The notes: a model not told the origin generated them from the letters alone. Shown: positions 23,518 to 62,700, counted from the first letter of the stretch. The stretch is 64,000 nucleotides of DNA from Pavona decussata (GCA_977016875.1 CDRNST010000197.1:186001-250000); one strand, 5' to 3'. Numbers and translations: made by a program.

Positions 23518-26500
23518 ATCAACTACCTATAACACTGATTAACTTTTTCCATTTTTTTAAATGATAAGTTAATTTATCTCTTTTCCTGGCAATATGGAGC
23601 TCAATAGAATAAACTCTCTTCGTTTTGGCAATGAACCCCTTTTAAGGAAGGCTTGGCGTTTTGGCATTTCCGAGAATAAATATAGTATTTACCCAACAAG
23701 AGAATATGATTGATTACAGGAAAAGAGTAGGTGCTCGATGGATTCGTCCTCTTTTTGGCAGAAAGTACATAGCGGTGATTGCGTAATGCCAAACTGAAAG
23801 AGCTTTTCATTTGTAAAAACAATTCGATTTAGAACTTTGTACTGAAATTCTCTTGATTTAGAGTCCATGGACGAGCAGAAGGATAAAGAATAGACCTTCT
23901 CCCAATCGACAGCAGAGTGTGGGTATTTGTCAGACAATTTCTTTTGAGCAGTAGGCACTTCCTGCTTCTTCCCTGGAACTGGCGATAAATTTGTTTAGAA
24001 GAGACATCAAAAATTTTTAAAGAACTCCCATCAACAGTGATGGTGGGAACATCTGGAACTGGAAAAACTATTGGTAGAAATGAAGCTTCTTTTATTATCG
24101 TGCGCCAATGAACTGGGATGGAGTCAATGATACTCATCACAAAAAAACGTTGCTCAGGATTGAGCAGTAGATTCGTAAAGCTAAATGCTGTACCGTTACC
24201 CGAGATTAAATCCCCTAATTTTAAGAGGCCAATGGTAAAAAGATCCCTTCTAAAAAACGATTTTTTGTCAACACAAAGAAACTTATTGTTCCATACAATT
24301 TGATTCGCAACCTCTTGAAACGAAAGTGGTGTATTGTTGTTCATATCAGACCAGGAATCGAAGCACTTTTCATAGAAGGGCGGCAATGTTACTCTTAACT
24401 TGGTAGTATCGAAATTGCAATGAAGTACAAATTTACCACCCACAGATAACAGACGTTCATCGAGGAAGAACTTCCAAGGACTAGGATAATCTTCCAAATA
24501 TTTCTTTAAACAGGAAACACGTTTTGTACAAATCATTGAGTCAATATCGAGCATGTTTAAGCCACCACTCTCAATGGTGGAGGTGAGAACATTTCTTTTA
24601 ACTTTATCTTTGCCATTCCAGATGAAATTGAAGAAAATGGAATTCGCATTTTTTATAAGTTCTTTAGAAATAGGTATTGCTGATGCCCTGAACATAAATT
24701 TGGGAATCGCGAAGGTTTTAACTATCTGTATCCTCCCTAAAAGTGACAAGCCTCTCCATTTCCATAGATTTAAAGATTTCTTTATCGCCTTTAAAGTTTC
24801 CCTAAAATTTAAGTCGTCCCTTTCTTTATCGTTACCACCGAAATAGATTCCCAGAATTTTTATAACATTGCGAAGGTTGTGCATGTTAGATAAATCTTCC
24901 CATATAGAACTGTCACCAAAGGCTAAGGCTTCTGTCTTCTCATGATTGACTTTCAACCCCGAGCACTCCCCAAAGTCGTCGAGGAGGCGAAATAGGCTGG
25001 TATAAGACCTTTTGTCTTTCAGAAAACATGTCATATCGTCAGCGAATAAGTTGAGCTTTACATTAACTTCACCAATTTTAAAGCCTTGAATGGAATCGTC
25101 GTTTCTTATCCTAATCGCCAAGACCTCTAATGCGATTATAAAAAGATAAGGAGAGAGAGGGTCACCTTGTCTTACCCCTCTTCCTAATGAGAAAGGCCCT
25201 GTTGAAAAACCATTGTTCATCACACAACTTGAGGCATTTTTATACAGCACGCGTATCCACTGGATAAAACTAGGTCCTAAATTAAATTCGTGTAATATTC
25301 TTATTAAATAATTGAAATTAAGAGTGTCAAAAGCTTTCTCAAAGTCAACGGCTACTAAAATTCCAGACAAGCCTTTCTGTTTAGTATGCTCTATTACATC
25401 TTCTATCGTTCTGATCGCATCGAAAATCGTTCTTCCTTTGACAAACGCATTCTGATTGTAGTGAATAATTTCAGGAAGAGTCTTTTCCAAACGTTTTGCT
25501 AGAGCTTTTGACGCTATTTTCGCATCCACATTTATAAGAGATATTGGACGCCAGTTCTTTATCAATCTTTTATCCTTCCCTTTCTTTTCAATTAAGGTTA
25601 TAATAGCCTGTTTCTGTGAATTAGAAAGTTCTCCATACTCAAATGCATGATTTAAACTATCGACTAGCAATGCTCCAATAAGAGGCCAAAAGGCAATATA
25701 GAACTCTACAGTTAAACCGTCATTTCCTGGAGATTTATTCTTTTGGAAAGACCTCAACACATTATAGCACTCTCCATATCCTAGTTTTCCTTCGCAAATA
25801 TTTCTCAGATTTTCAGGCAATTTTGGAATTTGATTTGATTTGCTAATAAATGTAGATATGGCATCCGAGTTTGCACAACTATTTCCATCATAAAGACTCG
25901 AGTAATAAGACTCTAATTCATTCATAATTTTTTGGGGGTCGTGTGTCAATGATCCCTCACTTGTAAAAACTTTTCTTACGCTGGTTTTCTTTTTATTAGA
26001 ATTTTCAAGATTGAGAAAGTATTTATTGTTCCTCTCACCCATTTCGTACCAAGTCGCACGAGAGCGTATGATAGCTCCCTGTGTAATAAAGTCGTACAAG
26101 TTCTCATATTCTGCTTCTAGAGATTCCAGTTCCTCAAAATTTTGAGGAGGGGTCCTTGTCACATTTATGAGAGCATTCTTTTATACATTCCTCAACCTCT
26201 TGCAATTTTGCTTTTCTTTCGCGAGCTTTACTTTTACTATACTCAATAGTACACTGACGTATTCTATATTTAACTAAATCCCACAGAACTCGTTTATCCA
26301 AAACCTCCTTAAATTCCTCTAACCAAACATTATAATTTGCGCTAATTAGTTGACAGTAATCTGAATCGGTATCAATGTCCACTTGCAGACAATCGCTGAC
26401 CAGCCAGTAATCTAGACGTCTTTGGATAATTGGTGTTTTTTGGCGCCATGTAAGCCTTGTATCGGTAGGATTGCGAATGCGCCAAATATCTATTAAGTCG

Positions 26501-27045
26501 TGTTCTACACACATTTCTTCGACAAATTTAGCAGACTCTTTCCTCTTCTTGTTCCCTCCCCGCCCGTCTAAAACCTCGTCAAGAGTTACGTTAAAAACGC
26601 CTCCGACAATGAGATATGAATCACATTCTGCTGTCAAAGACTTAATTTCTTCTGAAATATTTTGAAAATATTGAATTTGCTCGCTGCACTTATTTGGAGC
26701 GTAAATATTCAGAAGACAATAACGCGAATCCTGTATAATTGCGTCCAACGTAATGAAACGGCCTTCAGGGTCTGTCTTAATTGTTTGCAAATTAAAATCC
26801 AAATTGTTCTTTACAAGCACCAAAACTCCTTTGTTATGGCATGTTCCATGAGAAAAAAACAAATCACCCCTCCACTGTTTCTTCCAAATATTTTCCACGT
26901 CACGAGTACTATAAGTTTCCTGCAAGAAACAAATTTCCGCGCCAGATTTACTGAGCCAATTGAATATGGCTTTCCGCTTTTCAAAGGTACGAATCCCTCG
27001 AACATTTAAGGACAATAATTTAAAATTAACATTGCTAGGCCCCAT
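23518..27045 (-). pseudogene. L1/Tx1 ORF2 (EN-RT-zinc knuckle), frameshifted
   Basis: Split across track ORFs 26134..27066, 23829..26162, 23689..23958 and 23601..23822. The end of the EN domain appears deleted (DIDT/DSDY junction). Confidence 0.88.
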
Positions 27046-27486
27046 GTGACTGAGAGAAAAAGACAATAGTACAATGGAAAAAGCTGAACAAAAAAAAAAC
27101 AGTTTTGTTTAAAAAATACTAATGAAGTAACAATGACAACTAAGAATTGAGGATGTAAATCAGATTTTGACACGTCCAAATAGCCATCAGCGAAAACAAG
27201 AGAAAAAAACGCAAACAGAAACAATATACGTAAACAATTGCACAAGGAAACAAAATTTAAATTTAAATTTAAGAGGGCAACAAAGAAAAATATCCCGAGT
27301 GCTGCCCTTGAGAGTGGAACTCGTATCGAATAAGAAAGCCTGACCAGTCTTGGCCGCTTAATCAGCTAGGCCGGTAAAGGCTCCACTGCACCTTATTATA
27401 GTATTATAATAGAGTAGACTGAAACGCAGCTTATCTAAAGAATAATTCTAAATAGCATAATATTCAAACAATAAACAGTTCAAAGT

Positions 27487-32800: not shown

Positions 32801-34864
32801 TTTACGTACAAAAAACGACAAAAACACGGGTATGGATAACATAAGTTTTACTTCAATATGGATTATCTTACAATGATGTTGTTAATTACTGAACAGCTTT
32901 TAACATTCATTTACAATCAGAGGGAATCAAAGATTGCGATCCTACTCTTACGGGGCGGAACTCTGGATCATCAGTAAAACAATGTTAGCAGAAAAGCTAA
33001 ATTACCACTTGGCTAAACGTTCCTACAGCTAGTTCTTATAGCTTCCTCGTGATATTGTAGTAAGGTACTATAGCTATCTGTGCCTACTGTATCTGTCTAT
33101 CTACCTATCTGTATCTACTGTAGTTCTAAGTGTTCTTGCGCTGCTCAGAATCGTTATAAATGCAATGCAATTGCGCTCACCAACTTACACTAAACTTTAT
33201 CTTAATCTTATACTTAAACATAATCGACAATAGAAATACTTAATTGCAAATACACTAATTTTCAATCAATTCAAACTAAGAAAGAAACAAAATTTAATCT
33301 CAACGTTGTAAGTACTTCCCATGCTAACTTTAACATTCCCTATATAATAAAATAGCTACATACTGGTGATAAGCAACTGCAAATGACACTGACTTAAGCT
33401 TATCTATAACGAGCTCGCGAAAAACCTACCACTGGCGTAAATCGCTGGGTCAACGAACAACAAACAACTTGCCACCTTAGCAACTGCAATGACTGCGCTG
33501 AAAAAAAGAGCAGCGCTGTTACATCTGCCTACATTCCTATTTCATAAAATGGCCGATCGAACAGCCTTAAAAAGACTCATGGTTGATATTCAATTTATTT
33601 GTTCAGACACGAAGATTACAACTGAGTAACATGACTCCTACAAATTCGCTGTCACGGAGCACCTCAAGTAGTAGCCTTAAATAATCTTCGAAGATAGGCC
33701 TTACGTTGATCGACAAAGAGATCTGTAATTAGCCTCTAGATGAACCTGACCTTATGAGTCTTATTGCTGGGAAATCTCACGTAAGCTCGAACAAACTGGT
33801 AACAAGGTAGAATCGACACTAAGAAAAGCTAAAAAGTCGGATGAAGTTTAATTAGAAGTCTACCAATTAATTTCAGTGACAAGCGATTACCTGGTCCCCC
33901 TCCCAATCTCATTGACCCAATTTGGACACCTCGGTACATTCAAAACCGCCACAATATCAGCGCTTGCTATCTCATTTAAAAGAGCAATGTCACCTATTTA
34001 TAGTGTCGCTTCGAAAAGCCCAAAAAGTTATCTTTATCAAACGTTTAAGGGGGTACTAACTCAACTACCATATTGTTCCTGTGGAAAGTAAACATTAACT
34101 TCAACAGAGAAGTTGTTTGGACAATTTTTTTCTATTTGAAAGGTTTTCAAGATTTTCGAGTCACAACCATATTTGACAAGTCGCGTAACCAAAACAGAAA
34201 AAGGCGTAAAACTTAAACGGTGAACACGGAAAAATTGAAAACATTGCCAATAGTTAAAGATCGTCAGAACGAGACGTAACAATTTTTCGAAATTTGAATT
34301 TTATAAAAGTTATGACGTCATAAACACGCATATTTACCCACTTTCTTCAGTAGCAGTTATATTATTTTCAAAAACAGTAAACGCTTACGTTAGGTTATAA
34401 CAGGCTCTAGTTTGATCTTCCTCTAGTAAGCACCTAAGGACGTTCGCGCGGAAAATCGATACATTCCTTTTTTGGTAAAACTTTTGCTGTAGCTGGGTAA
34501 TCAGTTAGTCGTGTTAGAAATGCCAAAAATTGGGGAGGGGGAGGGGGGGACCACTGACTTTGCTCCGAAGGTATATCTAAAAAATCACCCCAGTTTGAAA
34601 AAATTGGTCTCCTTATATCCATATGACCCCACTGTCTGTTAGTGTAACAATTTCTTTCATTCGTGCTACTTCAGGATTATTTCAAAGCGTTCAAATTTTA
34701 CGGAAACTAATCTCTCGTAAAAGAGGGGAAGAGGTCACGAATCATTCGAGAGAGTTAAGTCCAATCAAAGTAACCCAACGGCTACAAGAACTATATGTGG
34801 TTAGATTTCTGAGTATGAGCGCACGCTCGTGCATGACATAGCTTGACATTACGACGTGAATTAA

Positions 34865-36063: not shown

Positions 36064-36686
36064 TTAAAGGGCGTCCAAAATGCGGATCTTTAACTGATCA
36101 CCACTCTCTTGCGCAAGTTTACGCAATGCAACTGGATCGCGGCTACTGGACATCCAGACCTCAAACGGCCACCTTTTCTTCAAACCTACTGTTATGGCTG
36201 GTATCATGTAAGGATCGACATTCACAATAACTACTGTTCCTTTCTTTACACCTCGTCTTGAAACTACACTCACAATGTCACTAACCAAACTAGTGTGAGA
36301 AGACATTTTTAAGACTAATGTCGACTCATGTTTACTTATTTTATCCCAAACAGTATCTGATGATCCAGGTTTGTATCCATACAAAGTTGCCATGGCAAAT
36401 TCTCTGTCACTGACAACAAAACCTATTAAGTGCCCAATGTCTTTACTCATCACTTCCAAACTAGGACTATAGTCTACAAACATATACAAAACCTCCTTTT
36501 TGGTGTTGCACGATGGAAGCAGATGAATTGGCTCTGTGCACTGTTCGTCAAGACAAGTATGGCTGCTAGTATCCCACAATTGATCACAAACACAGCTATC
36601 GCACGCTATGTGCTCCTTGCTGCATTGCCAGCGCTTGTCAAACTTTGTTAGGGGCTCTTGGCATTCTTTACATGACCAGTACTTGC
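36064..36686 (-). CDS. GT4-RING-NYN protein, last exon: RING-type zinc finger plus degenerate NYN (PIN-fold) domain
   Basis: Minus-strand acceptor gttgttcttag|GC, phase 1. C-x2-C-x12-C-x3-H-x2-C-x2-C-x12-C-x4-C, followed by FVD...DIG...LYG..P...DTVW.KI...LVSDI...TVVIV..D...IPA...W.FEVW...LD. Confidence 0.75.
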
Positions 36687-37334
36687 CTAAGAACAACAAC
36701 AACAAAAATGGAATTATTATACATTTTACTTACACCTTTCAAAAGCTCTATTTTCACTGGACTCAGCTGCATTGTTTTTAACTCGTGAATGCGCGCATGC
36801 GCAATGAATGAGTTTTCAGGATGCGTACTCTGGCGAAAAATGTCTGATTGGTTGAAATTCAACCACGTGACTAAGTAGTTTACTCGACGCGCGGAGCCTG
36901 AACCATAACTACAATGCCTATCAAAATGACAGCCGATGATCTACATGATGGCGGGATTTTTCAAAGTTTTACGACCGGCATGAAGAAAATTTTCAAACTG
37001 TCCTTGTCGTGAAATCTCTATAACGTAGTTTATTTGTAGAGGATTTTAAGTTTGTACAAGAGAGGGAAAAAGCAGACGAACATAAACGCTTATCGCGAGA
37101 AGGGTGTACGTAAGATGTCTTGAAAGATAACAGTAGATAATTATACTTCGTGGTGTTCTCGGCCGAGAGCTGTACGTGTGGACTAATGCTCATATTAAGA
37201 AGAAGAACCAGAGCAGGTGAAGAGTGCCATGGCAACTTGAGAGGATTCGATGAGTTTACGACTCGATTTTCGGGTGCTAACGCAAGTAAACTGTGCGTTC
37301 CACTTTCGTCACTGGATGAGAGCCTCTAAAGAAG

Positions 37335-37868
37335 CAAATGAATAGTAACTTGGATGATCTGTTCCGGGCACAAGGGTGGCGAAAACTTTCTCATCAAAGA
37401 TTGGATAAGAAATCATTTATAATGTATAAAACTTTAAATGGGATGACACCAGAATATTTAAGATCAAACTTTAAGTTTTTCGCGATAATTTGAATTCTTA
37501 TCATTTAAGGAATACTGAAAACACGCTACATTTTCCACAACCGCGCACTGATTATTTAAACAAACGTTTCTCATAATGTGGAGCTCAGTTGTGGAACAGT
37601 TTGCCAATAGAATTACGGCAAGCAACTTCCTTGAATGATTTAAAGACTAAATTGAGACGCCACAGTTATAAGTAAGAGTTTTAAGCACGGCCTCCATGAA
37701 AAGCAGCATTTATTGTTTAGTTTTGTTTTATTTTTTAAACTTTTTATAATCAGAGTTAGGTAGATAGATAGTTAGTTGATAACGATAATCTAAGTAGCTG
37801 TTAGAAAAACCGTGTATAAGTAAAGTTATCCTATCCTATCCTATCCTATCCTATCCTATCCTATCCTA
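37335..37868 (+). mobile_element. CR1/L2-group LINE 3' fragment ending in an (ATCCT)n tail
   Basis: Degenerate GW..L..QR...MYK.LNG.TP.YL...PQPRTDYL...GAQLWNSLP. Microsatellite tail at 37828-37868. Confidence 0.7.
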
Positions 37869-37882
37869 CTGTTGCAACCAAC

Positions 37883-38002
37883 CTGTCACAGTATCCTCAG
37901 ACTCTCCAGCAGCCATTTCGTCATCTGGCTTCAACACAAGGCAAGTCGGTTCCATTTCATGCTCACCGTCATCTTGCAATCCTGGACCTTTATCTTGTTT
38001 GT
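37883..38002 (-). CDS. GT4-RING-NYN protein, middle exon missed by the ORF track (acidic linker DKQDKGPGLQDDGEHEMEPTCLVLKPDDEMAAGESEDTVT)
   Basis: Minus-strand ataatccag|AC ... ACAG|GTTGGT. 120 nt, phase 1 to 1, open frame bridging both neighbours. Confidence 0.7.
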
Positions 38003-38118
38003 CTGGATTATAGATCAACCAGAAAAATTGAAATGTTAGGGGAAAGGTAGCTTGCGTAGCAGGTGTAATTGGGCAGTGGGAAAGGGAACGAGAAAAAGTG
38101 AAAGATGATGCAACTAGT

Positions 38119-38314
38119 CTATTTTTAGATTATGAACTCATCGTTTCCAATAGCATTATAACCTCCACCCCTCTACCCGATAATGAACTATTCTATTTTA
38201 AGGCTATGAAGTATCCGTTTCCAACAGCGTAACCTCCACCCCCTCTACCCGATGATGGAACTATTCTATTTTTAGATTATGAACTCATCGTTTCCAATAG
38301 TGTAACCTCCACCC
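38119..38314. repeat. Tandem repeat, ~72-74 bp unit, ~2.7 copies
   Basis: Recurring ctatttt.ag..tatgaa...cgtttccaa.ag...taacctccaccc. Confidence 0.75.
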
Positions 38315-39046
38315 TATGACGCCATCGCCGTTAATGCATTCCCCCTTAAAAATTCCGGCCCAAAACATCCCTACTGGACTACGGTCAGCGTTTTTTTAAT
38401 GAAAGAAAATGCTCAAACAAAAAGCGATTTCTTTACAGGTTATTTTCAACTTGATAGTATCTGCTGGATGTTTTTCAAAATGCGATGAATTTTGAAAGCG
38501 GTTTCAAACATTTCGAAAACATAGCTTGTTTTTTCACGATAACCGGTAACATTTATTCGATTGGGCAGTGAAAATAACCGGTTACCGGCTCCTAACAAGA
38601 AGCCTGCCATCCAAAATTGTTATTTTTTCTCAACATTAAACAAATTCAATTGTTGCCAGTGAATGATATTTTTCGATGAAAGAAAGTTTCCCTTCTCCCC
38701 TCTGAAATTATTTCCTGGGTCATTGACTCCCCCCCCCCCCCCCAAGCCCACCCCTCTGCAATTTCGAGTTCCCTAAGTGGTGGAGGTGTGGATATTTTCT
38801 GGAACCACACAATCACGTTCATTAACAATCGGTGAAGAGGGCTCGCTTTAGAAAACCAAAAGGATCGGTTGGTAGAAAGCTTCAACCACTTTCCACAAAG
38901 AAAAGACTATGTTGGTGACGGCCCCTCTCAACCCCCTCAGTATAGAAAACAAAACAACACAGATGAAACGAAACTTAAAGGAATTACTGGGTTCCTTGCA
39001 TGGAGGATCGAGGGTTTTTCTTTTGTTTGTTTGTTTTCATACGTAC

Positions 39047-40205
39047 CATTGGGCATGTTCCTTATCATATCAACAACAACACTGCACTGCTCTTCCCAAT
39101 TATATGTCTTGGCATAGTTATCGAGTAAAATTTGCGCTTCTTCCAGTCGACGTTCATAGCCTTTGTGCAGTATTTTCTGAATCTTTTTCACCCACTCCAT
39201 AACGTCATCAGAGCTAACCACATACTGTGAACCAAACGGAACTTTCTTCAGGACTTGTCCTAATCCCGTTTTGTCTGTTATAAGAACAGGCAGATTTGCT
39301 GATATCCCTTCCAGAGCAGCGAAGCCAAATTCCCCGGTTATCGATGGCATAATGGCAAGATCCACCTCAGACAACAATTGTTTATAACTTTCCCAGCAGT
39401 CTATATTTCTCACTGTCAGGCACTTTGGAGGAACATTACATTCTTTTAAAAGAGATGCTACTTCATCTTGTTTCTTCCCTGGTGGGACAAGAAAGATAAA
39501 ATTAACTTCATCTTTCAGCAGACCAACAGCTTCAGCGGCGATGTCAACTCCCTTTAGAGAGAAACCTTCGGTATCACCACGATCAAATACTAGGACTCGA
39601 AACTTGTCTCCTTCTTGCTTCCTCTGCACTGCGTTGTCAAACTCGCTGAAAATTCCCGGTGTAAAAACAAGCAGATTTTGGTCTTTCGCTCTGCAGCGAA
39701 GAAAGGAGCGGTAAGCATCTTTCAGCTTAGGCCCGACTGCTACGACAAGATCAGCCATCTTACAAAGGTCCACTTCTCGATCCTTTTTTTGCGCCTTTGA
39801 CATGGCACCGGGGTAAGCTTTGGACATTCCCAGATCCTCCGGGTCAGTATGAACAAACTGGACCCACTTACAATTGCGGATTTCCTGAATGATTTTCGCT
39901 TGGAGACCAAGTGAGACCTCATGTCCGATTACACAGTGAATCTGAAGGTCTTTTGGAGGAAAAGGAAACAATTTGGACTCATCGTAAAATTCAGGTCCCC
40001 TTGATGCCTGAATTAGAGTAACATTCTTCTTCAGAGCTGAATCCTTTTCTTCTTGGTCGCATTGTGGGACAAAGACGGACACTTGTACATCAGGGCGTTT
40101 TGCAAGTTGTATGGCCAACTCCCTATGGAAAATCGACAGCCCGTCACGCTTCGATCCCCACTCTGAGGCCAGTAGCAACAATTTCAATTTTGAGGATGAT
40201 GCCAT
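39047..40205 (-). CDS. GT4 (Glycos_transf_1, GT-B fold) glycosyltransferase exon of the GT4-RING-NYN protein
   Basis: LLASEWGS...GLS...RELA..LA, WVQFVHT.PE.LGM, LC..ADLVVAVGPKL, KG.DIAA.AV, DLAIMPS...FG..ALE..SA.LP. Donor AATG|GTACGT, phase 1. Possible acceptor at 40226/40227. Confidence 0.85.
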
Positions 40206-56335: not shown

Positions 56336-57949
56336 TCACTGGAAATACGCTTCCAACGTAGGTGGATCCAAGCCAAAATACGACGATGTTACGGACTGGT
56401 AAAGACATGTGCGGGCATTCGTCAGCAGGGCACACACCATGTACATTTTGCCAACTGCGCTTAAACGAATTTTCAAGTTCTTCTTCAAATCCATAAAAGC
56501 GAAGTAATTTATAATGTCTCCGAAAACCCACTCTACTGATGTTCTAACACTGCTCATTGCACTGTTGTATTCATTCTGTAGAGGGGTAATCCTGGCACCT
56601 TTGAATGGTCCTTGAAGGTGTATATTTAAGGGGTAGGCCGGATCCCCATATACACATAAGGGTTGACCAAGAGGGGAAAATGAGTGGCGTTGCAAATCGC
56701 CAAGTAAAGCAGACTCTACTAACATACCACTGTCATGTCGTCTCCCTTCAACTGGACCATACAGGTTAGCTATCAATCCATTTGGGGCGGCAACGGACTG
56801 AAATTTTATGGCATGGACCCTCTTGTGTCCGTTGTACAGAACTCTTTGGTTTTTCCCAGGCCTAGAAACTGGCCTAACCGTTCCATCGATAAAACCCCAA
56901 CAGTTTTGAAGCGGAGCTCCTTTAGCATGAATTACATCGGCATAATTCTGAAGATTGGCCTGAGAAAGCCATGGCTGGTTAAAACTTCGTAAACGGTGAT
57001 TTTGTGTTTGATAAATGAAGTTCATCATTTGGTTCGATATCATGCAAAGTTGTGGCACGGGTCTTGCAAATCTTGGCAGCATATCCGAATATCTACATGG
57101 GTATGCAAATCGTTTAAGAAAAATACACAGAGCTTCAATTCCGTCCACAACAACACGATTATATATATCTTATTCGATGGTTTTACATATAATACGCGCG
57201 GATATTTTGCGAGTTGCGTAGTATTTTTCCGAGCCCCGAAGGGGCGAGGAAAAATACGAGCAATGAGCAAAATGTCCGCGAGTATTATATGTAAAACCAT
57301 CGAATAAGAGATTTATTATTCCACTACAAAAAGATTTTGTTATTTTGGCTTCTCTGTTTTGGTAACAGTTTTCAAATGCACCCGGCATCAACTGTCCATC
57401 GGTTTATGGCGCGTACGAATGATGTAAACAACACAGAAAGCCAGTTAAATGTCTTTAATTTGATTAGATAAAATGAAAAGATAAATGACAAGTGAAACTT
57501 GTTTTCGAGTCTGCATCGTTTCAAAAACTATTCTTCGTCCAGTCCGGACATTGTTGCTCCTTTTTTCTGCCTTTTCCGTCCGTATTCGCTCTGTTGTAAA
57601 CCGGTCAAACCGGGACACTACAGCGTATTACGGTCTCATATTTTGCGCGTTCTCTTGACCTTATTTGGTGAAATGACATAATAGTGGAATAATAAAGCAT
57701 CTTATTTCATCTGGAACATGCGCGCATCACTTCAGCAAGACGGTAAACGCCGTTCTTGAGGAATCTGAATTCCGACTTGCATTCATCGTCCGTTAGCAGA
57801 TCAAGGTCAAACTGGTCGTAGCTCCAATACGGTAGATCAAGGTTGTTTGACTTGTTTAAATCGTACAAAAGCAAAAATTCTTCATCGTTTATCAACTTAT
57901 CACTGTGAGCAAAAAGCAAGGTATCTCTAACTTCTCTTAGAGAAGGCAT
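56336..57949 (-). pseudogene. HARBI1-like DDE transposase (DDE_Tnp_4), split by an insertion and a frameshift
   Basis: CWGFIDGT, YNGHKRVHAIKFQ, GRRHDSG, YGDPAY, RTSVEWVFG. The N-terminal part (MPSLREVRD...ECKSEFRF) rejoins as VPDEIRC|YNRVVVDGIEALC across the insertion. Confidence 0.88.
57164..57696. mobile_element. Asymmetric palindromic non-autonomous element inserted in the transposase
   Basis: Hairpin tcttattcgatggttttacatataatac / gtattatatgtaaaaccatcgaataaga around a GC core gccccgaaggggc. Second inverted pair tttattattccacta (57312) / tagtggaataataaa (57682). Confidence 0.75.
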
Positions 57950-60112: not shown

Positions 60113-62700
60113 ATGCCTCCTAAAGTCGACGTAACAGTGCTAATTGCAAAAAGGGACAGGGTTCATTATACGATCTTCTTGAAGAATTTAACATGCTTTG
60201 CGAAGTCCAACCAGTGATAAATATACTCGAAAACGTTTACAAAGAAGTGGAAATTAAGTACAGAAGCGTGAAAAAGCAACAAGAGACAATTGCGGACAAG
60301 TTGTGTGAAGTTAGCACAGAAGGTTCCGAAGAATTAATGAAAGTTAATCAAGGGCTCGGAGAAAAAGCCAAATTTGATTTTCTGCAATGCAGTGAAAAAT
60401 TCGCAACTTATCAAAAGGCGTGCGGCGTTCAAAAATCGTCCGTTGAACACAATGCGCTTGATGTTATGGCAGAAGCAGTGACAAAAATGGCCGAAGTGTT
60501 AAGCTCGCAAAAGAACGTTAGTCACGGACTTGAGAAATTGTCAGTTCCAAAATGGGATGGCAACAGGAAAACTTATGCCACTTGGAAACGCGAATTTAAA
60601 TATTGGATGATCAAATATAAACAAGACGATGACGAACAGCTTCAGCGTCTCCGAAAAGCGCTTCCCAAAAACCCCTTTTGGTCCGATCAAGTTAAGCCAA
60701 GTACGACAATTGAGCAGGCGTGGAAAATTCTCGACTCGGAATTTAGTGATGAAAGAAAATTGATGGACACGTTGCTGAATGAAATTACTAATCTCAGACC
60801 TGTCAAAAGCGACTCATTCTCGCTTTCTCGTTACGCATCAAGAATCCAAAGCTTCGTAAATAACATGGAACAAAACGGTTGTCATGTAACAAGTTCCTCT
60901 GAAGCTCCCTTTGTTATGTCACAATTATTGTCCAAATTAGATGGCAAAGACAGTGTTGAATTTGGCCGCGAAATGCAGCGCACTGGAAAAAGAGAAAACG
61001 TGACAAATCTGATTGATTGGCTGTTGAATGAAGCAAGTCTGCGATCACGCATCAAAAGGGAAACTAATTATCAGCGAAGTAATTCAGGCGTCGGTTCCGA
61101 CAATCATGCCAACGATAGCGACGCAAATACCGATGAGAAATGCCCGCTTGGATGCGAATTAAGACACCTACTTTCGGCATGTCCTACTTATCAAAAGGCA
61201 GATGTAAACCAAAGATGGGAAATTGTAAAACAAAACAACCGTTGCAGAAAATGCCTACGTGCTCATCACACGAACATTTGTAAAAAACCCGATGGCACTA
61301 CTTGCAACAAATGCACTCGACGCCATCACCGTTCCCTACATAACGAAAGCATGTCAACGACAGAAACCAGACAAGATCCTGAAAATGTATCGGCTTCAAA
61401 TGCAAGCCAAGAGGCCAGTAATAACAATATTCAAGGAAAAAGAAGCGTTCTCTCTATTTGCCCTGTCCAAATGGTGAAGATAAGAGACAAAGACGGAAAT
61501 TACATCGAAGTATTAGCTATGCTCAATAGTGGTTCAAACACAAGCTTCATCTCAAAGAATGTTGCAAAGAAACGTGGGATCCGTGGTTACAAAACACATC
61601 TCACGATGAACCTCGCAGGAGGTCAAAAGAAGTCTGAAGAATCGGAGCTCATCGATCTAGCTGTTTCCTCTACCCTGGAACAATGCGTTAAGAAATCTAT
61701 GCAAGCTTATGCCATTAACAAGCCATGCAGTTCAGCGAGAACAGTTTCAAGAACAGCATTAGAAAGATATCCTCATTTAAAACCAATCGCAAACAATTTG
61801 CATTTATCAGGTGGAACAGTGGACCTGTTGATTGGTACAGATTTTGCAGACGCCTTCAATGCATGCGGAGAGCCGATAGCTAAACGAAATTGCTTTGGGT
61901 GGTATGTCATCGGAACATTTGCTGGTCAAGTAAATCAGCAGTTGACAAGAATTAGTTCAGTGGATGTTGGAACTGTCAGCGTGCTAGAGGACATGAAGAA
62001 ACTTCTCACTCAAGATTTGATGGGAGTGAGACCAACCGAACTCTGTACGTGTAGAGATAGCGATCTCCAGGAGAACAAGTTTATCAAATCGATTTTGGAG
62101 TCCACCAAAATCATAGACGGCAGAGTACAGGTTCGAATGCCCTGGAGAGGAAATGGACCTCCAAATGAATCTAACTACGACGCTGCTTACAAGAGAATGA
62201 TTTCTGCAGAAAAGTCCTTCAAGAAAAAGGATTGCACCGAAATAATCGACTCTGAAGTACAAAAGCTGGTAGAACTAGACGTCATCACAGAAATACCCCC
62301 TTCAGAAGTGAATCACAATCTGCCAGAATGGTATCTTCCTTTGCAAGTGGTATTCACTCCCGAGAGAACAACCCAAGTCAGACTAACTAGTGTTCGATGC
62401 AAGTGCGAAAGGTCCAAACGGAAAATCTCTCAATGACTACCTTGAAAAGGGACCGAACTACATTAACAGTTTATTAAACGTGTTAATGGCTTGGCGTTAT
62501 GATAATGTAGCATACACTGGAGACGTCCGAAAAATGTTCAACCAAGTATTGATCCACCCAGAAGATCAAGTCTTTCACCGTTTCCTATGGAGACCAAACG
62601 GATATGAGATGCCTAGAGTTTATCAGTGGAAAAGATTGAACTTCGGAGATAAACCGGCCCCAGACATCGCTGCTGGAGCTATCAACACCTTGGCAAAAGG
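60113..62700 (+). mobile_element. BEL/Pao LTR retrotransposon gag-protease-RT, frameshifted and 3'-truncated
   Basis: LEKLSVPKWDG (DUF1759-like gag), three Cys/His knuckles, protease MLNSGSNTSF, RT VFDASAK...SLND.LEKGPN...GDV.KMFNQV...RFLW...RL.FG. Frameshift at ~62385. No RNase H or integrase. Confidence 0.9.

Follow-up and report, generated by a model that had tools for sequence, protein, structure and literature searches.

The 64,000-nucleotide (nt) stretch of the stony coral Pavona decussata analyzed here (GCA_977016875.1 CDRNST010000197.1:186001-250000; hereafter the window) carries on its minus strand, between 36064 and 40205, three exons whose predicted product of 633 amino acids (aa) would consist of a GT4-like domain, a linker, a RING-like module, and an NYN-like domain. 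On balance, we favor the reading that these exons form a lineage-specific chimeric gene of the coral GT4-conflict expansion, predicted from sequence to give a single mRNA for a non-catalytic adaptor protein. The GT4 domain would be a self-contained 5' exon with a phase-1 donor that is spliced onto variable downstream modules. The tail would be a final exon that originated as a copy of the 5' half of a RING+NYN+CCCH gene for an RNA regulator and is truncated just after the NYN domain, standing in place of the Death/PNPase exons of the closest paralogues or the NACHT domain of the NLR-like members. That the three exons are spliced into one mRNA is what the comparative evidence suggests.

Homology, profile, and fold analyses were performed separately for each exon, and own-genome searches covered the 602-Mb stony-coral assembly (about 40% GC in the window). 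Exon 1 (1,159 nt) comprises 386 open codons plus 1 nt and ends at the donor AATG/GTACGT; in-frame stops precede its ATG, and an open reading frame (ORF) of 422 codons spans 38937-40205 (minus strand). Exon 2 is bounded by the acceptor CCAG/AC and the donor ACAG/GTTGGT, and, read in phase 1, its 39 inner codons contain no stop. Exon 3 (623 nt) follows a pyrimidine tract and the acceptor TTAG/GC, and has 206 open codons and then TAA. The sum, 1159 + 120 + 623 = 1,902 nt, corresponds to 633 codons and a stop, every junction being phase 1 with canonical GT/AG borders; the predicted junction codons, if the exons are joined, are GAC and GGC. The original prediction, a stop-free coding sequence of 1,902 nt from three exons with phase-1 GT/AG junctions, was thus correct in coordinates, splice sites, and arithmetic. 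Exon 3 lacks an in-frame ATG upstream of the RING-like module and therefore depends on an upstream coding exon; for the same reason an unspliced stand-alone gene was rejected. Additional exons 3' of exon 3 were also rejected, since no family-derived sequence lies downstream: a tblastn search of the window with five RING+NYN+CCCH family members found nothing beyond exon 3, no remnant of the C-terminal half of the family (middle domain, CCCH, CCHC) was seen 3' of it, and the window has no other coding block between or after the three exons.

Exon 1 matched the GT4-conflict profile of Pfam (PF20706) with an E value of 5e-66 and 223.7 bits (cut-off 26), covering profile positions 1-382 of 385. Against NCBIfam it matched only distant GT4 enzymes, well under their cut-offs, and a phmmer search of the PDB sequences gave no match, so that the family profile was required. 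The same genome contains at least 107 GT4-conflict exons. These matches bear out the earlier assignment of the N-terminal domain to the GT4 type of the expanded coral NLR-like genes (PMC4083563; PMC8195603). In 15 of 15 paralogous and orthologous loci, the GT4 frame ends at the homologous codon with a phase-1 donor, G/GTA, which argues that the family is built with the GT4 ORF as a 5' exon rather than as a gene of its own. None of the three exons matched a NACHT or NB-ARC NTPase profile, in agreement with the absence of an NTPase domain stated in the original prediction. The closest GT4 paralogues in the genome (59-66% identity) have PNP_UDP_1 and Death-domain exons downstream on their own strand, as GT4+PNPase+Death-type genes without an NTPase; annotated Oculina proteins have a GT4+linker+Death layout of 552 aa. 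Because the closest paralogues carry PNP_UDP_1/Death exons, we regard the gene as a member of this NTPase-less subclade with its tail exon swapped.

The arrangement was compared in two other coral assemblies, ENA ERZ26692669 (species 2; loci L017/L024), the closer one, and ERZ26692694 (species 3; loci L025/L015), the more distant one. Collinearity of species 2 with the window extends from 48750 to 31509, and the three exons occur there in the same order and on the same strand with all splice sites kept; aa identity was 75% for exon 1, 82% for exon 2, and 87% for exon 3. In species 3, a GT4 exon, two linker-like exons, and exon 3 lie on one strand within 24 kb, with identities of 59%, 75-79%, and 70%, respectively. 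Exon 2 with both splice sites and the acceptor of exon 3 are conserved in both species. The intron adjoining exon 2 is no longer alignable in species 3, where the exon, with a 6-nt in-frame indel, and its splice sites are conserved. Intron 2 measures 1.2 kb in the window, 9.2 kb in species 2 (with reverse-transcriptase fragments), and 4.2 kb in species 3. Across the three species, exon-internal indels are in-frame only, and all frames are open. When neutral evolution was simulated at the observed divergence, a stop-free exon 1 came out with probabilities of 0.002 and <0.0002, and a stop-free exon 3 with 0.15 and 0.016. The ratio dN/dS ranged from 0.68 to 0.93 across exons. Judged from these comparisons, the exon pattern is beyond chance. 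A search for the GT4-RING-NYN layout in other cnidarians, which the original prediction had proposed, thus recovered it in two more coral assemblies with the same order, strand, phase, and splice sites, and the picture in that prediction of phase-1 exon shuffling fits the 15 of 15 phase-1 donors and the phase 1-1 linker conserved in both species.

Similar linker exons follow other GT4 exons in species 3. On one contig of that assembly (ctg14912; L018 14578-20949), a second GT4 exon is followed by four exon-2-like linkers, including one in inverted orientation. In species 3, the linker exon is a family module that undergoes duplication. A search for exon 2 as a common linker in the own genome found only the window copy, the 39-aa query being a weak probe. 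Within intron 1, the segment 38104-38314 (minus strand) matches a tandem repeat located just upstream of exon 2 in species 2 (L017 13772-14190); the several copies there amount to a minisatellite-like difference in copy number between the species. Downstream of exon 2, a (GGATA)n microsatellite (37845-37867, minus strand) comes right after the conserved stretch past the donor. Collinearity with species 2 stops at 37868 and restarts at 36817, and the gap in species 2 contains the reverse-transcriptase fragments.

The product of exon 3 gave no RING or NYN match in Pfam or NCBIfam, NYN being absent even at an E value of 5. The sole paralogue of exon 3 in the own genome, L002 (682-2160, minus strand; C118:2411615-2415013), was found at 3.6e-17 in the genome search and 7e-25 pairwise, and scores 35.5 bits on the Pfam NYN profile, above the cut-off; no second copy of the degenerate subtype represented by exon 3 was found in this genome. 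A HMMER search with exon 3 against 1.84 billion representatives returned 26 relatives, one cluster of which includes a Pocillopora meandrina 'NYN domain-containing protein', and PF01936 was matched by 23 of 28 aligned relatives (best 1.2e-16). The relatives share a layout of Cys module, NYN, middle region, CCCH fingers, and CCHC knuckle. The AlphaFold model of exon 3 built with the family alignment reached a predicted local distance difference test (pLDDT) score of 89.6 and a predicted template modeling score (pTM) of 0.86, against a pLDDT of only 41.5 from the single sequence. With VIA-align, this fold matched 2qip (Z 14.1, root-mean-square deviation [rmsd] 3.0, 131 residues) and the Marf1 NYN structure 5yaa (Z 13.2, rmsd 2.5, 128 residues), the next row scoring 9.6; Foldseek agreed more weakly, with target-normalized TM-scores of 0.57-0.61 for MARF1 NYN. 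Owing to the homology to relatives that pass the NYN profile and to the structural matches, we conclude that residues 64-206 of the exon-3 product are an NYN-fold domain. The original claim of an NYN domain therefore stands by way of relatives and fold; a direct Pfam match, to which that prediction had itself tied the claim, was not obtained.

L002 consists of a single 492-aa ORF with a partial RING, a canonical NYN domain (DDSN, KQVD, SGDAD), a middle region, two CCCH-like fingers, and a CCHC knuckle, and likely represents the donor family of exon 3 in intact form. Among the relatives, the stand-alone P0002 has an acceptor at the position equivalent to that of exon 3, and its NYN domain is already degenerate. 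Another coral assembly (ERZ25071797; L026 9808-10414) has a remnant of RING and degenerate NYN separated by a frameshift, and no GT4 lies within 10 kb of it; this copy is probably a pseudogene that belongs to the exon-3 subfamily. P0003/P0147 was considered as a second, independent GT4-NYN fusion and rejected, because no GT4 lies within 10 kb and a frameshift separates RING from NYN.

The RING-like module has the spacing C-x2-C-x12-C-x3-H-x2-C-x2-C-x12-C-x4-C, and its eight ligands are invariant in 4 of 4 loci. The last ligand pair is separated by x4, as in several relatives, versus x2 in the C3HC4 consensus C-x2-C-x(9-39)-C-x(1-3)-H-x(2-3)-C-x2-C-x(4-48)-C-x2-C. Two of the relatives touched Pfam RING profiles (zf-RING_5, E 4.8; zf-C3HC4, E 0.64). 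The N-terminus of the family profile retrieved RING fingers only from the PDB, namely TRIM56 (0.0079), TRIM32 (0.015), and RNF4 (0.025), followed by RNF168, BRCA1, RING2, and others, and a lineage-only profile matched the PCGF5 RING at an E value of 0.21 in ligand-for-ligand register. The nearest named clusters in the language-model Atlas were RING families, at a sub-threshold score of 0.77, and the model reached a pLDDT of 85-96 over the module. The usually hydrophobic position of C-x-[ILV]-C is Glu in the window, which would be an unfavorable sign for ubiquitin-ligase activity. We consider the Cys module to be a probable RING finger on the strength of this pattern. What stood of the original RING claim was the invariant C3HC4 spacing, together with weak matches that all pointed to RING; a direct Pfam match and statistical significance were not reached.

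Both enzyme-like domains have lost catalytic motifs. Canonical members of the donor family have the NYN motifs FVDxSNxWIEAKK, GKEKQVD, and SGDAD in common. The window has FVDYS in place of FVDxSN and the helix after it, a deletion at 36289-36303 removes the GKEKQVD loop, and NVDPY replaces SGDAD at 36208-36222, the second Asp being Tyr. The loss of the Asn and subsequent helix of FVDxSN is shared with P0001. In the window copy, its two orthologues, and P0002-P0004, the first Asp is kept, and the GKEKQVD loop and the second SGDAD Asp are lost (N-V/G-D-x-Y). Anantharaman and Aravind are said to have described in 2006 four conserved acidic residues that form the metal-binding active site of NYN domains. 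Only two of the four, the FVD Asp and the first GDAD Asp, are left in the window, which makes RNase activity unlikely. The activity of KHNYN requires its active-site Asp residues (PMC11670115).

In the GT4 domain, the family profile places the family motif PSRTEGFGLAALEA in register with the EX7E motif of glycogen synthase 2bis. An EX7E motif with both Glu residues is the catalytic signature of retaining GT4 enzymes. The first Glu is changed to Gly in the window only; the residue is 95% conserved in 117 homologues and retained in species 2 and 3. The second Glu is retained in the window, and an adjacent Glu might compensate, to judge from the sequence, for the one that was lost. R289 is replaced by Ile, and G208, G96, D90, and S313 are also changed. 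At the 159 GT4 columns that are at least 90% conserved among the 117 homologues, the window has 34 mismatches, species 2 has 29, and species 3 has 18, against a background median of 3 and maximum of 24 for the same columns. From the loss of two of the four Asp residues and the loop in NYN, and of the EX7E Glu and other residues in the window GT4, we infer a non-catalytic role: the protein is most likely neither a glycosyltransferase nor an RNase and would rather serve in binding, as an adaptor. A coupling of a sugar-nucleotide enzyme to an RNase, taken as a catalytic function, is accordingly unlikely. The GT4 and NYN folds may instead provide surfaces for ligands or partners (a sugar-nucleotide or glycan, and RNA), and the RING, with its eight zinc ligands intact, would be the sole possible output, by ubiquitin ligation or oligomerization. 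The gene evolves fast, like others of immune type.

Five observations weigh against this interpretation. The RING assignment on its own never became statistically significant. In species 3 the GT4 exon lies 24 kb from exon 3 with the two linker-like exons between them, so that a single transcription unit is less certain there. No full-length GT4+RING+NYN protein was found among the 120 best relatives of exon 1 or the 26 relatives of exon 3 (1.84 billion representatives). Directly upstream of exon 3 are a conserved palindrome resembling a promoter element and what may be a mini first exon. Lastly, a dN/dS near 1 and lost catalytic motifs are also what would be expected of a decaying gene.

The palindrome and mini-exon lead to the main rival explanation, which we consider unlikely but serious: two transcription units, in which a short GT4+linker gene would be followed by an independent RING-NYN gene starting from the palindrome/mini-exon, the fusion being apparent or a minor read-through isoform. 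With 0.01 chance matches expected, the palindrome TGCGCATGCGCG occurs just once in the window; it is conserved in the three species and is a candidate internal promoter element on this pattern; we take it to resemble an NRF1-type core-promoter motif. Together with the conserved ATG and the phase-1 mini-exon upstream of exon 3, it would allow a GT4-less RING-NYN isoform or two genes. The ATG, an open phase-1 segment, and a GT donor are conserved in the window (37 nt) and species 3 (43 nt), but the mini-exon of species 2 has an in-frame TAG and the wrong phase (phase 0), and yet exon 3 is open there with its high identity. Moreover, the implied intron would be only 45-52 nt long. Reading through the exon-2 donor yields GWLQQ and a stop in the window, and about 18 nt beyond the donor are also conserved, as a short GT4+linker gene would have it; this stop is not conserved, however, for species 2 and the sp3a copy read through. 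The Acropora annotation has many 'GT4-only' proteins of 400-490 aa (PMC8195603), and stand-alone relatives of exon 3 occur without a nearby GT4 (L016, L026), both of which speak for separate genes. On the other side, exon 2 keeps its donor in a conserved phase, and the sequence downstream showed no alternative acceptor or coding block.

A functionless chimera, in which a GT4 exon and a truncated RING-NYN copy came together by accident and are drifting under relaxed constraint toward a pseudogene, at least in the species of the window, appears quite improbable to us. The dN/dS of all exons, the excess of altered GT4 columns (34 of 159, including the EX7E Glu), and the disappearance of the NYN active-site motifs are in line with decay, as are the loss of the C-terminal half of the donor gene, the frameshift in the related truncated copy L026, and the transposon-rich neighborhood. 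However, about 630 codons are open in three species with in-frame indels only, at neutral probabilities of at most 0.002 for exon 1 and 0.016-0.15 for exon 3; the splice sites are intact in all three species, and all eight RING ligands are invariant. The degenerate NYN motif, N-G/V-D-x-Y, is itself conserved within the subclade, which suggests a settled derived state and not random decay.

A further proposal, in which the disabled GT4 and NYN domains of an 'integrated-decoy'-style sensor would act as baits or ligand sensors and the RING would report by ubiquitination or oligomerization, with no STAND NTPase switch, is very doubtful; the baits may be directed at a sugar-nucleotide or glycan, at RNA, or at pathogen factors whose targets are the active counterparts of the two domains in the rest of the coral immune repertoire.

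Table 1. Features of the proposed chimeric gene in the window, and related loci in the same genome.
Feature	Position	Strand	Description
Exon 1	39047-40205	minus	Start codon and complete GT4-conflict domain, phase-1 GT donor
Degenerate EX7E motif	39306-39347	minus	Window PSITGEFGFAALEG versus family PSRTEGFGLAALEA
Intron 1	38003-39046	minus	1,044 nt
Exon 2	37883-38002	minus	120-nt symmetric phase 1-1 acidic linker exon (KQDKGPGLQDD...EDTVT)
Intron 2	36687-37882	minus	1,196 nt
Palindrome TGCGCATGCGCG	36792-36803	minus	In intron 2, some 105 nt 5' of exon 3
Candidate alternative first coding exon	36736-36772	minus	37 nt, ATG...AAAG/GT, phase 1; 49-nt intron to exon 3
Exon 3	36064-36686	minus	Terminal exon, RING-like Cys module and degenerate NYN; stop 36064-36066
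RING-like module	36529-36672	minus	Exon-3 residues 5-49
NYN-fold domain	36067-36495	minus	Residues 64-206 of the exon-3 product; assigned by homology and structure
Closest-paralogue loci with downstream PNP_UDP_1/Death exons	L021 7165-7527; L022 3294-4064, 7733-8071; L023 3-686, 4838-5149; L020 7179-7886		

Outside the gene, the window contains mobile elements and two stretches of note 3' of exon 3. A dispersed repeat present at least 46 times in the genome occupies 34063-34560 and explains part of the apparent conservation on that side. The segment 33497-33890 is single-copy in the genome, is about 76-78% conserved at the nt level with both species 2 and species 3, and lacks ORFs of at least 70 aa; candidates for its identity are a conserved non-coding element or part of an unrecognized untranslated region or neighboring gene. 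ORFs resembling a long interspersed nuclear element occupy 23829-27063 (minus strand), with matches to reverse transcriptase (1.6e-37) and to an endonuclease/exonuclease/phosphatase domain (5.4e-08). A DDE_Tnp_4 (Harbinger-type) transposase ORF lies at 56336-57145 (minus strand; 1.5e-23), and a 747-aa ORF at 60193-62433 (plus strand) with weak matches to aspartyl protease and DUF1759 resembles a retroelement gag-protease.

The expansion of the GT4-conflict domain in corals has been described (PMC8195603; PMC4083563; PMC12314368), and a coral combination of 'glycosyl transferase group 1 + NACHT' was reported by Hamada et al. (2013), as summarized in PMC4083563. The table of eukaryotic GT4 proteins of Kaur, Iyer, Burroughs, and Aravind (eLife 2021; PMC8195603) lists fusions of GT4 with NACHT, APATPase, DEATH, CASPASE, PNPase, SidE, UBI, ANK, RNA-helicase, TIR, and PIN+HEPN, and has no NYN or RING+NYN entry. 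Since the NYN domain of the window escapes Pfam, similar tails could be hidden in the 'GT4'-only entries (650-950 aa) of that table. The claim of a new architecture can be kept in part: the combination GT4+RING+NYN is missing from that table and from the database relatives, whereas both NTPase-less GT4 fusions, with DEATH, CASPASE, PNPase, TIR, UBI, or PIN+HEPN among others, and RING+NYN+CCCH proteins have already been published. The gene is a new domain combination inside a published, heavily shuffling family, not a new kind of architecture.

If the spliced mRNA is real, this gene would be a clean and datable case of the coral GT4 expansion gaining a tail by phase-1 exon shuffling, and it would add to the published GT4 partners an RNA/ubiquitin-linked tail captured from half of an RNA-regulator gene. 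With catalytic motifs lost in both enzyme-like domains, and with frames and zinc ligands kept in three species, it is a candidate pseudo-enzyme adaptor and bears on whether the GT4 heads of corals have any enzymatic activity. It opens no new class of system, and the functional roles given here are predictions.

The tail can be compared with several known systems. Exon 3 is homologous to the RING+NYN+CCCH proteins, which occur in corals and other marine invertebrates, across the Cys module and NYN, has the same Cys spacing, and shares its acceptor position with P0002; unlike them, it ends after NYN and lacks the middle domain, the CCCH fingers, the CCHC knuckle, the DxSN helix, the GKEKQVD loop, and the second SGDAD Asp. 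In amphioxus, a RING+NYN+CCCH-ZF immune cassette is fused to Death+TRADD-N (PMC8195603); the label given to it also describes the domains of the coral family. The fold of the NYN domain is that of the MARF1/LabA-type NYN (PF01936; 5yaa, 6fdl, 2qip), with Z of 13.2-14.1 and rmsd of 2.5-3.0 over 128-131 residues, but sequence identity is 9-12%, the direct Pfam match is missing, and two of the four acidic residues remain. In vertebrates, antiviral RNA decay by ZAP-TRIM25-KHNYN relies on the cooperation of CCCH RNA recognition, a RING E3, and an NYN nuclease (PMC11685948; PMC11670115). We infer a functional analogy only between this complex and the invertebrate RING+NYN+CCCH family, which has all three in one chain; the vertebrate components are different proteins, the window gene has no CCCH and a degenerate NYN, and we claim no homology of the whole complex. 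At its other end, the gene resembles the coral GT4-conflict proteins in having an N-terminal GT4 as a separate 5' exon with a phase-1 donor and swapped downstream modules, and differs from the published ones in its RING+NYN tail and in a GT4 domain that is unusually derived at conserved positions.

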